A DNA stretch of 63,885 bases, filler included, from Olpidium bornovanus S191 (lineage: Eukaryota; Fungi; Olpidiomycota): assembly GCA_017911155.1 (NCBI GenBank). It is 28 parts of 28 records of this genome, joined end to end, with 100 filler letters (N's around TTAATTAATTAA, not from the genome) between each part and the next. Parts side by side here need not be neighbours in the genome. Positions count along the whole stretch, not along the records: positions 6,135 to 9,253 come from JAEFCI010010908.1; 27 more parts are not named here. One strand, 5' to 3'. Shown piece by piece: positions 5,995-9,253 of the stretch. The position numbers were made by a program, and so were the translations under genes. The stretch's first letter is position 1; each line of letters starts with the position of its first letter. Under the pieces are notes generated by a model that had not been told where the DNA came from, searched no databases, and saw only the letters and a program-made list of their open reading frames with translations.

Positions 5995-6164
5995 CCCCCC
6001 CCCCGCCCGGGGGGGGGTTTTTTTTTTTTTTTCANNNNNNNNNNNNNNNNNNNNNNNNNNNNNNNNNNNNNNNNNNNNTTAATTAATTAANNNNNNNNNN
6101 NNNNNNNNNNNNNNNNNNNNNNNNNNNNNNNNNNCAAAAGGGCCCCCCCCCGGGGGGGGGGGGG

Positions 6165-6199
<35 letters not shown>

Positions 6200-6230
6200 T
6201 CGACCGTAAAATGCGTCCTCAGACGGCCCT

Positions 6231-7040
6231 TTAGACGGCAAAAGAATGTGCATCCCACAAAGGACAAGTGATCTCGTCCTTGGTGACCGCAAACCGATGT
6301 TGAAAGCGCCAACCGCATCCCGCCTAAGCCGTAATGCACTAAAAGCAGATTAGTTATCCGCGTATAGTACGGTGTACATTATTAGAAAAAACCACAAGTG
6401 CCACACTTGAAGGTCTTGCTGCCGCCGATCCTGTGAAACGGGCATTGCTTCGATATGTATTCTTCCGTCGTGATTACCACGTGGTTTGCTTGTAAGGGTC
6501 CGCGAGCGCCTTCGCGACGATCCGTTGCCGAAACGCAAAGCGCGAGCGGTTTTGCATTGCCTTCCGCATCAACGTGCACAACGGCGAAGCCCCGTCTCGG
6601 GGTGGTTCGTTCACGTCGGGCGCATTTCCCATCAGCAGTGGCATCTTCATCTGCGTCCGTCGCCCTCACACCATCTTGGGCGTCACAAACTTAGGTGGCA
6701 CGATGGTGTCGTACTCCCTGATGAGATGGTTGGCGAAGGCGTTGCGTGCCTGCCGGACGTTCGCTTTCACGCGATCGTGGCGGACGCTGATGCGCTTGAC
6801 TCCAAGTTCCAACAACCCCTCGCCTCTCCGGCCCCTCGACCTTTCGGGATCAGAGGATGACGGCAACGTTGAGTCTGTGACAAACTTTCTTAGGCTCTCA
6901 ACCTCCTGATCGGCGATGCGCTGCTCAACGTCGTTCTGCTAGAAGCGCTGCACGGCGGGAACACCACTTACCTGTTGCACCACGCGCAAAACCCGGCGCC
7001 TAATCCCGCCCGCGCCGTCCGTTCGCCTCCGCTTCTCCAG
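6231..7040 (-). pseudogene. Decayed Fanzor2 (IS607-TnpB-derived RNA-guided nuclease) gene, RuvC half
   Basis: In order: SGVPAVQRF (6942-6968, decayed DPGVxxF RuvC-I); ANHLIREYDTIVPPKFVTPKMV; LMRKAMQNRSRFAFRQRIVAKA; VVITTEEYISKQC; IGGSKTFKCGTCGF; RDAVGAFNIGLR (6287-6322); interrupted by stops and frameshifts. Confidence 0.85.
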
Positions 7041-7873
7041 TTACGCATGCCCCCATAATTCTAGGGACGACTTCGTAGATCGAAGGTGGTCCACGAGAGA
7101 GGAAAACACCTTTTGCCCCCCTTGGATGCGCCCGGGCCACGAAAATAGATTCACCGCTTTTTGCTTTCATAGGGGTTCCGGGCGCGTTTAGAGCGCGCGT
7201 GCCACACGGCCGCCGTTGCGCGCTCGACCCTACCCCTCGTGTCCACGTGGATCGCGGGGAACGGTTTCGTCAACAACGCGTGCTATAACGGAAGTCTGCT
7301 GCTGCGGGACGTCTACGTCGCGTAAGCAAAATTAGGGAGGAATGAAGCAATTTCTTTTTGGGCAGGTCAAACTTGCATAGGATGCGAGGCCGCGTTGGCG
7401 CCTTCGCAGCGGGCGGGCTTTGCCGGTAGCCGTCTCACAGGAAGAGTCTTACAAGGATCTACGACGGTGGCGTCATTAAGCCGCCAAATTGATTGCAAGT
7501 GAGAGAATCGGGAAGATGCTTCAGGAGGCCGCCGAACCAAAGCAGCTTCCCGTCGGCCGGGAACGATCATCTTTTGCCTGGACGGTGTCGAGCCGACCGA
7601 AAAGGAGAGCGGAAAAAAAAACATATCTCAGCCCAGCTCTCGCCGGGCAAACCACGATCTCTCTCTTTCTTCCGGGCGCAGTTGGAGTGCCAAGGGTGTT
7701 ACGCGAAGCCTACGGGGAGTCGTAACGGACAAAAATAAGGAAGTTTTGCGTTTAGGAACCCGGCGGGGAACAGGGAAGGGAAGGGAAAAGGATTTTGGAA
7801 ACCGTGGGAGGGCGCGGCAACTCGGGCGAGCGGGGGTCGTGTGGACAATCCGCCTGCGGAACCGTCGCGGCCT

Positions 7874-7911
<38 letters not shown>

Positions 7912-8370
7912 GAACAGTAAACAAAAAAATAGAAACAAAAAATAAAAAGAAAAACCAAAAAGAAAAGTCCGACAAAACCCGCATTTTGCGAGAAGTAGGT
8001 GCAAACTTGCGCTTTTGGTTCGGGGGTATGGGGGTTAGTGGGATATGGGAGGAGGGGCTTATCAAGGGGGTTCGCGTTCGACGAACGCCCCTGCCTTCCG
8101 TTTTGCGGGGAACCTGACCAGCGAAAAACCCCGACTCCACGAAATTCTGCGGTTTCGCCTGAATTTCTTTTTTTTGTATCTACGTAGATCGGAGGGGACC
8201 TCCGGGAAAGATTTTGAGGGGGGGGGGCGGGGGCGGAACGTTTGCCGGACAGGGAATAACGCGGAAAGGCCGCGGACGGTGGCGAAAAGGGAATGATTAA
8301 AAATATATACACGCCCGGTCTTGATGCTCACCGCCGGCGTAAAACTCTTTCTTTTTTTTGTTTTTTTGTT

Positions 8371-8673
8371 TTAATCCTCGGCCTCGTCCTCATCGTTACC
8401 CGCGGCCTCCTTCCGAGCTCCCGGCGGCGGGGCGGCGATCCCCTTCGCGGCGGGACCGTTTTTGTCGAACGCCTGCCTCAGCAGGTCCTTCTGCTGGCGG
8501 TTGAAGTACTTTGGGAAAAACAGCTTGAACTGCAGCACCAGGTCCCCTTTTTCCAAGGGGTTCTTCGAAAGCGGCATCCCCTCCCCCGGGATCACCTTCT
8601 CGTAATCCGGCCTTGGAAATAAAAAAGTAGTTTGCGGTGGTGGTGGTGGGGGGGGGGGGGGGGGGGGAAAAAA

Positions 8674-8708
<35 letters not shown>

Positions 8709-9253
8709 GGGGGAAAAAAGTCGCTGTGAGATGAAAAAAAATTGTGTGCGATTGTTGCCCCGAGTGCAGCAAGGGGCCGCAGCGCCCTGAGTGCGGTGGG
8801 TTCGGGGAAGGAGAAGGGGGGGGGGGGGGAAAGGGGGGCGGCGGGGGGCGGGGGGGGGGGTTGGGGGGGGGGGAGGGGGGGGGGGGGGGGGGGGACTCAC
8901 GTGACGACCTCGTTGACGGGGATGTGGAGAGTCCGACCGTCCAGCGTCTCGACCCGCAGCACAAACCCCGTCAGCGCCTGCACGAGGGGGATCTCGACGC
9001 TGTGGTAAAGGTTCCTGCCTTTGCGCCTGAACCTGGCGTGCGGCTTTTCGTTAATGATAAAGACCACGTCCGCTTGAAGGTCAAGCAAGCGTTATTTTTT
9101 TTAAAAGATGGGAATAAAGAAAATGTCAACCGTTTCGCCCCATTACTGGGTGGTGATCTCTCTCTCTCCCTCTCTCTCTCTCCCGCTCTTCCCCTCTCCT
9201 TCCGTTTCGTTTGCTTTGCGACACAAAGCACCTGGAATGCTGTTTACGCCATG
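8371..9253 (-). CDS. DNAJB13: DnaJ/Hsp40 class B C-terminal part, most like DNAJB13 (radial spoke RSP16); 5' truncated
   Basis: Exons 9232-9253, 8901-9072 and 8371-8611 splice to NSIPADVVFIINEKPHARFRR...LHIPVNEVVTPDYEKVIPGEGMPL...KGDLVLQFKLFFP...KDLLRQAF; subfamily assigned by eye. Confidence 0.75.

Follow-up and report, generated by a model that had tools for sequence, protein, structure and literature searches.

The window, the whole stretch of 63,885 nucleotides (nt) from Olpidium bornovanus S191, carries at positions 6284-6845 of its minus strand what appears to be the end of a gene for Fanzor2, a eukaryotic TnpB-like RNA-guided nuclease. With a probability of roughly 0.88 we take this locus for a Fanzor2 pseudogene of the IS607 type, decayed and shortened at its 5' end, whose RNA is made and spliced but serves no function. 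The copy seems to have been left with only the last ~185 codons of the gene, burdened with a stop, two frame disruptions, a deletion in the zinc finger and a 56-nt insertion, and the genome that hosts it is most likely eukaryotic nuclear and that of a chytrid. The analysis covered the piece at 6135-9253, the minus strand of which was read and translated in all frames, and the remnant is made up as follows:

6284-6845, minus strand: Fanzor2-derived coding remnant of ~185 codons (tblastn, family hidden Markov model (HMM), frameshift-aware profile alignment, blastp)
6669-6845, minus strand: frame-0 segment ending VRQARNAFANHLIREYDTIVPPKFVTPKMV (phmmer, atlas, family alignment)
6666-6668, minus strand: in-frame TGA stop, at the Arg of the family's MVRKRR (position 562 of the family member P0001)
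6484-6489, minus strand: 1-nt frameshift from frame 0 to frame 2, between ALADPYK and NHVVITTEEY (tblastn and profile alignment)
6388-6486, minus strand: frame-2 segment NHVVITTEEYISKQCPFHRIGGSKTFKCGTCGF (family HMM, E=6e-13; weak PF07282; alignments)
6326-6387, minus strand: ~56 extra AT-rich bases between CGF and RRD, where the family has just two codons
6284-6325, minus strand: frame-1 segment RRDAVGAFNIGLRS (tblastn, 77% over 13 amino acids (aa); HMM, E=3e-4)

The peptides on which an earlier note had based its description of a Fanzor2 relic were all recovered on the minus strand, where that note had put them. Frame 0 (7040 to 6477), which is interrupted by stops at 6939-6941 and at 6666-6668, yields SGVPAVQRF, YDTIVPPKF and RKAMQNRSRFAFRQRI on translation, and frame 2 yields TTEEYISKQC and IGGSKTFKCGTCG between 6486 and 6385 and, when read over 6486-6379, NHVVITTEEYISKQCPFHRIGGSKTFKCGTCGFF followed by two stops, while RDAVGAFNIGLR is encoded in frame 1 (6349 to 6284). 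Besides the helical stretch 5' of RuvC-II, the preserved part includes the RuvC-II position and the relocated Glu as well as zinc finger and RuvC-III, and it corresponds colinearly to the last ~185 residues in a TnpB/Fanzor family known from chytrid nuclear genomes and metagenomes. A tblastn search of the piece with P0001 returned three linked high-scoring segment pairs with E=2e-35, located at 6845-6489 (48%, 122 aa), 6498-6388 (55%, 44 aa) and 6322-6284 (77%, 13 aa). The HMM built from 19 family members matched four consecutive window pieces colinearly (E=1.7e-16, 2.7e-17, 6e-13 and 3e-4), and a profile-to-DNA alignment in which frameshifts were allowed reached 186 bits across 6797-6286. When the read-through peptide, with X at the breaks, was compared by blastp with P0011 of Geranomyces variabilis, it matched at E=2e-59 and 54% identity. 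Finally, in a tree with four relatives at 28-33% identity to P0001 as outgroup, the relic falls within the chytrid/metagenome clade with support of 95/91, and its terminal branch is long, at 0.85 where the median is 0.14. Because tblastn, the colinear HMM matches, the 186-bit alignment, blastp and the tree agree, the relic is, on sequence grounds, real and far beyond chance from YDTIVPPKF onward, with significant homology to the TnpB/Fanzor superfamily in its RuvC and zinc-finger C-terminal half.

Searches with parts of the relic gave a compatible, if uneven, picture. The 57-aa piece encoded at 6669-6839 had four phmmer matches among 1.84 billion representative proteins (E=3.4e-7 to 9.6e-4, 57-63% identity), all of them with PF07282 and half of them hypothetical proteins of Borealophlyctis nickersoniae, and in a protein-language-model search of the ESM atlas its top clusters were PF01385 (OrfB_IS605), with scores of 0.95 and 0.94, this family being present on 77 of 100 matches. 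Pfam placed a weak PF07282 match (Cas12f1-like_TNB, formerly OrfB_Zn_ribbon; E=0.088) exactly on the zinc-finger stretch, and the Pfam and NCBIfam scans of stop-free pieces found nothing beyond it. No match was obtained by phmmer of the window pieces against the PDB, nor in a length-windowed homologue search with the 90-aa and 102-aa pieces, the length window of which leaves out full-length relatives. Scans for related loci with window pieces in viral and metagenome contigs gave pattern matches and no confirmed relative, the atlas yielded nothing informative for the 34-aa zinc-finger piece, and Rfam reported no credible family on the piece.

Lesions and retained motifs of the relic

Part of the catalytic signature of the family can still be read in the remnant. 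In the frame-0 segment the canonical RuvC-II Glu position is occupied by Pro, as in the family, and the LPEF of the family has become PPKF, with Lys at the equivalent of the near-invariant Glu554. The relocated catalytic Glu (6465-6463) stands six residues ahead of the first zinc-finger Cys (6444-6442), in E-EYISKQ-C, and the window hence shares with the family both the relocated Glu and a non-Glu residue (Pro, in IVPPKF) at the canonical RuvC-II site. The Arg-Asp of RuvC-III is likewise kept in RRDAVGAFNI (6325-6296, with Asp at 6319-6317), aligned to the family-invariant R664 and D665. The earlier statement that all RuvC motifs are present in order is therefore borne out from the RuvC-II position onward, through relocated Glu and zinc finger to RuvC-III, and lacks support for RuvC-I.

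The lesions are numerous. The TGA at 6666-6668 aligns to a conserved Arg and is kept in RNA contigs colinear with the genome over 6617-6838, and the frameshift at ~6486 must be regarded as real because an RNA contig spans it over 6427-6611 without a gap. Five codons have been lost between Phe 6438-6436 and His 6435-6433 (CPF-----H), which takes out the invariant second Cys of knuckle 1 (C638 of P0001), and the window thus reads CPFH...CGTC where its relatives have the C4 finger CPFC...Cx2-4C. The second knuckle, CGTC, is intact and represents a normal variant within the family. It had been proposed that the first CxxC was deleted; the deletion in knuckle 1 is there, and of that pair the second Cys alone has gone. 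Substitutions have also accumulated at invariant or near-invariant positions (LPEF to PPKF, ISH to RSR, and FTLHKTTRK to SPLCTLMRK).

RuvC-III is parted from the zinc finger by the 56-nt insertion and by the change of frame that goes with it. The inserted stretch at 6326-6387 brings two stop codons and a net frame shift, and has a GC content of 0.37 against 0.59 alongside. Within it, the 51 nt at 6326-6376 differ by two to three mismatches from an AT-rich soil-metagenome sequence with a depth of ~560, compared to ~10 for neighbouring nuclear-like contigs; they also match a 714-nt AT-rich RNA contig, and the left boundary of the stretch coincides with the RRD codons. By its composition and matches, 6326-6376 looks like a short organelle-derived filler, similar to a nuclear mitochondrial DNA segment (NUMT), lodged between zinc finger and RuvC-III. 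A 54-nt GT..AG mini-intron at 6392-6339 was considered as the source of the insertion and dropped, since the GT/AG combinations are all divisible by three and do not restore the frame, since GTTTTT makes a poor 5' site, and since abundant AT-rich sequence elsewhere matches the stretch.

Other parts of the element are missing. There is no detectable sequence for the N-terminal ~430 residues of the family, no trace in the piece of the IS607 transposase TnpA at E<=1, in keeping with the earlier observation that no serine-recombinase TnpA is visible on this contig, and no conserved 3' block by nhmmer and 3' alignment. Lacking the N-terminal WED, REC and RuvC-I regions, TnpA and the 3' RNA block, the window copy would be unable to cut DNA or to move, and to judge from its sequence it is dead. 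The same had been concluded before from a shorter list of lesions than the stop, frameshift, deletion, insertion and truncation described here.

Transcription, splicing and the RuvC-I question

Upstream of the remnant the RNA evidence defines two further features:

6841-6971, minus strand: spliceosomal intron of 131 nt, CAG/GTAAGT ... CTGAT ... AAAG/G, skipped in an RNA contig
6972-7188, minus strand: transcribed upstream exon, covered by RNA contigs and with no significant family homology

The locus is transcribed from the minus strand at a low level and spliced, since one contig skips 131 nt with canonical minus-strand splice borders. This 300-nt RNA contig joins 6972 to 6840 with a single mismatch, the ends reading CT..AC on the plus strand; the borders of the intron and a CTGAT branch-like site can be read directly from the sequence. 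Near-identical RNA contigs of one organism cover 6427-6611, 6617-6838 and 6970-7188, transcription being restricted to 6300-7215 with 7216-9253 silent in the same RNA runs, and the read depth over the relic is very low (2-5). Splicing cannot rescue the stop and the frameshift, because the RNA contigs are colinear there and the flanking conserved residues are contiguous. Hence, of the stops and frameshifts by which the gene had been said to be broken, the TGA at 6666-6668 and the 1-nt shift stand, and one supposed break turns out to be a spliced intron.

The intron also bears on RuvC-I. The peptide SGVPAVQRF, which the earlier note had taken for RuvC-I with a lesion from Asp to Val, is encoded at 6971-6945, inside the 131 nt that are spliced out; as no other RuvC-I match beats chance either, that identification is unsupported. 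When the RuvC-I block of the family was aligned to 7420-6800 with frameshifts allowed, the best match was WTTFDLRSR at 7093-7069, with 16.6 bits; the shuffled null gave 13.8 +/- 2.1 bits, with seven of 60 shuffles reaching at least 16.6, and the plus-strand control scored higher (19.0). WTTFDLRSR in frame 1, tried as a trace of RuvC-I or of the block after it, is accordingly not significant against the shuffled null, and a second candidate in frame 2, HPRGAKGVF...SIYEVVPRIMGA, was rejected as RuvC-I for want of statistical support.

The length of the intron is not a multiple of three, and the stretch that it interrupts is open in frame 0. The same stretch is ~90% conserved in a paralogous RNA contig of higher representation (6850-6932, depth 28-35). 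Given the open frame and the conservation in the paralog, the intron seems to reflect a splice site newly formed in what was once coding sequence. Other RNA contigs of the same organism match the locus only at 6850-6932, 6697-6742 and 6397-6434, with 87-91% identity, and these short matches fall on its most conserved stretches, namely the zinc finger (6397-6434) and NHL..YD.IV.P.F (6697-6742); one paralog contig has 6-7 times the depth of the relic's own transcripts and an upstream flank that reads as a Lys-rich linker. The match at 6850-6932, together with the short diverged matches on conserved stretches, would indicate that the organism transcribes at least one other member of the family. 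In keeping with the expectation that this genome harbors a Fanzor2 family, diverged paralog fragments occur among the organism's own RNA contigs.

A relative of the locus is also found in a soil metagenome, where ~90% identical syntenic contigs extend over 6196-6735, 6956-7676 and 8169-8627; an exact 24-mer scan of metagenome contigs for this soil relative found none. In one ~90% identical soil contig an additional G follows 6486 and would bring frames 0 and 2 together; the same contig has more small indels at 6233, 6256 and 6287. Because of that extra G, the frameshift in the window should be younger than the split from the soil relative. The AT-rich insertion appears to be common to both, since the soil contig shows no 50-nt gap there.

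Once 6971-6841 is spliced out, frame 1 of the upstream exon continues into the frame 0 of Fanzor origin, which creates an open reading frame (ORF) of 83 codons that starts with the ATG at 7048 and stops at the TGA of 6666-6668; a separate 56-codon ORF starts upstream at 7170. One may therefore ask whether the spliced transcript has been co-opted, either as a small domesticated Fanzor-derived protein encoded by the 83-codon ORF or as a regulatory non-coding RNA, in which case a chytrid would possess a product of either kind derived from Fanzor. The confinement of transcription to 6300-7215 against the silent 7216-9253, the canonical splice signals, the new 5' exon joined in frame to a helical segment of Fanzor origin and the synteny kept in the ~90% identical soil relative all speak in favor of it. 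Nonetheless, the 56-codon ORF lies ahead of the presumptive coding sequence, the intron slices through apparent former coding sequence, family-invariant residues have been freely substituted on a long branch and read depth is very low, and we regard co-option as very unlikely. The transcription of the relic is read instead as opportunistic transcription of a pseudogene. Even so, the locus shows that Fanzor relics can stay transcribed and gain spliceosomal introns, which bears on the assimilation of such genes into eukaryotic genomes.

The intact chytrid and metagenome family

Taken alone, the relic would be of little weight, as another dead gene fragment of transposon origin. Through it, though, a coherent IS607-type Fanzor2 clade came to light, with members among chytrids (Spizellomycetales and Rhizophlyctidales) as well as in metagenomes from soil and elsewhere, and its elements could be screened as eukaryote-adapted compact RNA-guided nucleases. 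A search seeded with residues 420-686 of P0001 returned 21 proteins; 16 besides P0001 itself are 38-59% identical to it, and the remaining four 28-33%. The family comes from metagenomes and from Borealophlyctis nickersoniae (Rhizophlyctidales), Geranomyces variabilis, Geranomyces michiganensis and Thoreauomyces humboldtii (Spizellomycetales). The genomic copies reside on chytrid nuclear contigs of 74-350 kb amid ordinary host genes, that of G. michiganensis (locus L002) being a single exon of 2,139 nt. The intact relatives are mostly open, full-length Fanzor2 of ~640-760 aa; PF07282 is found on all members of the family, and their source records carry no TnpB or Fanzor annotation.

The family alignment displays SIDPG at RuvC-I and VIVLPEF, whose Pro takes the place of the canonical RuvC-II Glu. 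It further shows TTEEY(S/T)TKQCPFC, the first Glu of which stands six residues ahead of the first zinc-finger Cys, then a second knuckle of the form Cx2C or Cx4C and an invariant Arg-Asp at RuvC-III; DPG and ExxxxxxCxxC occur in nearly all members. The combination of DPG with a Glu six residues before the zinc finger is the signature that parts Fanzors and pro-Fanzors from ordinary TnpB (PMC10711439). For the TnpB/Fanzor superfamily as a whole, Bao and Jurka gave the motif D-x(125,275)-[TS][TS]-x-x-C4 zinc finger-x(5,50)-RD (PMC3627910), and in the mimivirus Fanzor2 structure the shifted Glu is catalytic, as part of the triad D324/E467/D501 (PMC11832414).

The genetic context of the relatives points to IS607. 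A TnpA of the IS607 type, with MerR and serine recombinase domains, lies directly upstream of the nuclease gene in five of six loci (L001, L002, L003, L004 and L006); on the metagenome contig L001 it is a 183-aa MerR and Resolvase gene that ends 12 nt ahead of the nuclease gene. Gene-model fusions to Resolvase (3/16) and MerR (1/16) are also present. In P0002 and P0009 of B. nickersoniae and in the metagenome protein P0007, TnpA remnants are fused to the Fanzor ORF in 'hypothetical proteins' of 828-883 aa. Right after the nuclease stop, L001-L006 share a conserved non-coding block of ~100 nt, with the consensus CCTACCTGTCGGG .. GAGGAC .. GCTTGC .. GACACTC .. TA.ATAGGTG, and the loci diverge past ...ATAGGTG. 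Its positions are:

L001, 8068-8170: conserved 3' block
L002, 7140-7250: conserved 3' block
L003, 7617-7720: conserved 3' block
L004, 4259-4360: conserved 3' block
L005, 5287-5385: conserved 3' block
L006, near 5683: conserved 3' block

From its position and conservation, this block is probably the omega-RNA scaffold and right end of the chytrid IS607-Fanzor2 element. An intact element would accordingly consist of TnpA (MerR helix-turn-helix and serine recombinase), Fanzor2 and the ~100-nt block at its right end. By analogy with characterised Fanzor2 and TnpB systems, the intact nuclease would bind an omega-RNA made from the 3' region and cut guide-matching DNA beside a target-adjacent motif, with a catalytic triad of Asp (in DPG), the relocated Glu and Asp. 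On the contig with the most complete TnpA-Fanzor2 pair, a KilA-N domain gene occupies L001:1-295. KilA-N domains are common in large DNA viruses and phages, and the gene is at best a faint hint of a viral carrier. A scan of viral contigs with P0001 found nothing, and the viral source that had been considered possible for the family is for that reason without support.

The closest solved structure to P0001 is that of ApmFz2 (Acanthamoeba polyphaga mimivirus L79, PDB 9B0L), a Fanzor2 borne by an IS607 element, which is its best PDB match both by phmmer (E=1e-4) and by Foldseek on the AlphaFold model (E=3.6e-15), where it precedes Cas12f and TnpB, with no Fanzor1 structure among the top 50. ApmFz2 resembles the chytrid family in its DPG, its Glu six residues before the zinc finger, its upstream TnpA and its conserved 3' non-coding RNA region, and differs in that overall identity is ~15% and the chytrid proteins are ~150-250 aa longer, with a basic linker from RuvC-I to the helical region; the window copy, by comparison, is reduced to a broken C-terminal fragment that lacks RuvC-I, TnpA and the 3' RNA block. 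The family is placed in Fanzor2 because of the upstream TnpA, the TnpA fusions, the conserved 3' block and this best match. Since TnpA adjoins the relatives only, the relic's membership is one of descent and not of its own context. With DPG, relocated Glu and IS607 TnpA in its relatives and 9b0l as the nearest structure, the designation 'Fanzor2 relic' given in the earlier note is supported at the level of sequence and predicted fold.

Assignment of the family to Fanzor1, or to an unclassified Fanzor/TnpB lineage, would account for proteins of 640-880 aa with long N-terminal regions and a basic linker, for the ~190 aa between the RuvC-I Asp and the relocated Glu, where the published pattern has 120-160, and for a profile search of the PDB that gave no more than weak Cas12f/Cas12m zinc-finger matches. 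Against this stand the IS607 TnpA beside five of six loci, the top rank of ApmFz2 by sequence and by fold, the lack of any Fanzor1 in the top 50 Foldseek matches and the fact that the extra length stems in part from gene models fused to TnpA, and such an assignment seems to us quite unlikely. Several points nevertheless weigh against the reading of the locus as a transcribed Fanzor2 pseudogene in a chytrid. The call of Fanzor2 over Fanzor1 leans on the TnpA association and the best structural match, and the AF2 model of P0001 is moderate, with a predicted local distance difference test score (pLDDT) of 68 and template-modelling (TM) scores of 0.24-0.33. The family-profile search of the PDB, with its weak zinc-finger matches, did not recover 9b0l, and the relatives, at 640-880 aa, are longer than typical compact Fanzor2. 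Nuclease and omega-RNA function is attributed to the intact relatives by analogy, and 'chytrid' as the host of the relic rests on those relatives. The RNA evidence, lastly, consists of assembled contigs without strand data, the strand having been deduced from GT..AG.

The nearest known proteins are the chytrid homologues (KAJ3300409.1 and KAJ3285045.1 of B. nickersoniae, and those of Geranomyces and Thoreauomyces), which are 48-55% identical over the preserved region. They have in common with the window the motifs VRQAHNAFANHL, LPEF, TTEEY.TKQCPFC, KIG..K.FKC and RD.VGAFN, and unlike the window copy they are full-length and retain DPG, the complete zinc finger, remnants of TnpA upstream and the 3' block. 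Another RNA-guided nuclease of the TnpB family borne by a chytrid, with relocated Glu, is SpuFz1 (the Fanzor1 of Spizellomyces punctatus, PDB 8GKH), whose host genome contains many partial Fanzor1 copies too (PMC10432273). SpuFz1 differs in being a Fanzor1 in a terminal-inverted-repeat (TIR) element without IS607 TnpA, and in a comparison with P0001 it lay outside the top 50 fold matches and gave no sequence match. Cyanobacterial IS607 TnpB or 'pro-Fanzor' elements and yeast IS607-like pseudogenes likewise pair a serine-recombinase TnpA with a TnpB-family gene, and decayed single IS607-like copies have been reported in fungi, for instance in S. cerevisiae EC1118 (PMC3673617). The window is set apart from these by its eukaryotic host, its spliced RNA and its nearest relatives, which are chytrid and not bacterial or yeast.

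When Fanzor1 and Fanzor2 were defined in 2013, zoosporic fungi were listed for Fanzor1 only, and fungal Fanzor2 only in yeasts (PMC3627910). Later surveys found Fanzor2 to be broad in fungi (PMC10432273), and Fanzor2 is known to go with IS607 and to be enriched in giant viruses (PMC10530073). Our literature search found no paper on this particular chytrid Fanzor2 clade. The relic is hence a new, dead example of an already known Fanzor2 type.

Neighbourhood of the relic on the piece

Two features of the surrounding piece are relevant to the origin of the locus:

8371-8598 and 8897-9088, minus strand: DnaJ C-terminal domain gene in two exons (Pfam DnaJ_C; the atlas clusters are eukaryotic DnaJ_C)
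6163-6195, minus strand: run of 33 A (A33) on the coding strand, ~90 nt past the end of the homologous codons, with C and G runs between it and the edge of the piece

Pfam DnaJ_C matched 8897-9088 at E=1e-11 and 8371-8598 at E=0.0089, the latter with 16.5 bits and thus under the 26.6-bit cut-off; the intron of the gene (8640-8895) is filled with G runs of 20-40 nt. An intron-split eukaryotic DnaJ gene on the same piece rules out a bacterial contaminant and shows that the contig is eukaryotic nuclear DNA. The origin in a contaminant with canonical TnpB that the earlier note had named as a refutation was thus not what was found. A bacterial TnpB on a contaminant contig, or else an intact intron-bearing gene misread as broken, might be suspected from the weak direct Pfam signal (E=0.088) and from the one apparent break that is truly an intron. 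It is, however, hardly credible in view of the DnaJ gene and the spliced RNA, of a Glu that is relocated rather than canonical, of relatives that reside on chytrid nuclear contigs and of a stop and a frameshift that fall at contiguous conserved residues, leave no room for an intron and are both present in RNA contigs.

The A33 run raises another possibility, namely that the locus is a processed retrocopy, in which a Fanzor2 mRNA was reverse-transcribed and inserted, 5'-truncated and with a poly(A) tail, and not an IS607 copy that decayed in place. The 5' truncation without TnpA, the A33 on the coding strand ~90 nt beyond the last homologous codon and the absence of the conserved 3' end of the element are all consistent with such an event. 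Yet long homopolymers are common in the piece (A36 at 7875-7910 and several G runs), so that the A33 may be a coincidence or an assembly feature of the edge; the piece ends 60 nt beyond, which leaves a target-site duplication uncheckable, and the transcript of an element should include the conserved 3' block, which is missing here. We therefore consider a retrocopy unlikely and prefer the decayed IS607-type pseudogene.

As minor observations, the three RNA runs in which the relic is covered yielded no contig for the DnaJ gene beside it, perhaps because that gene is weakly expressed, because of a filter, or because contigs break at the G runs. On the plus strand, the homopolymer at 6163-6195 (T33) forms with A36 (7875-7910) an inverted pair around the 1.68-kb segment that holds the relic, and C14 and G9 runs follow the homopolymer at the edge of the piece. 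These runs may be a feature of the genome, retroposition tails or assembly artefacts.

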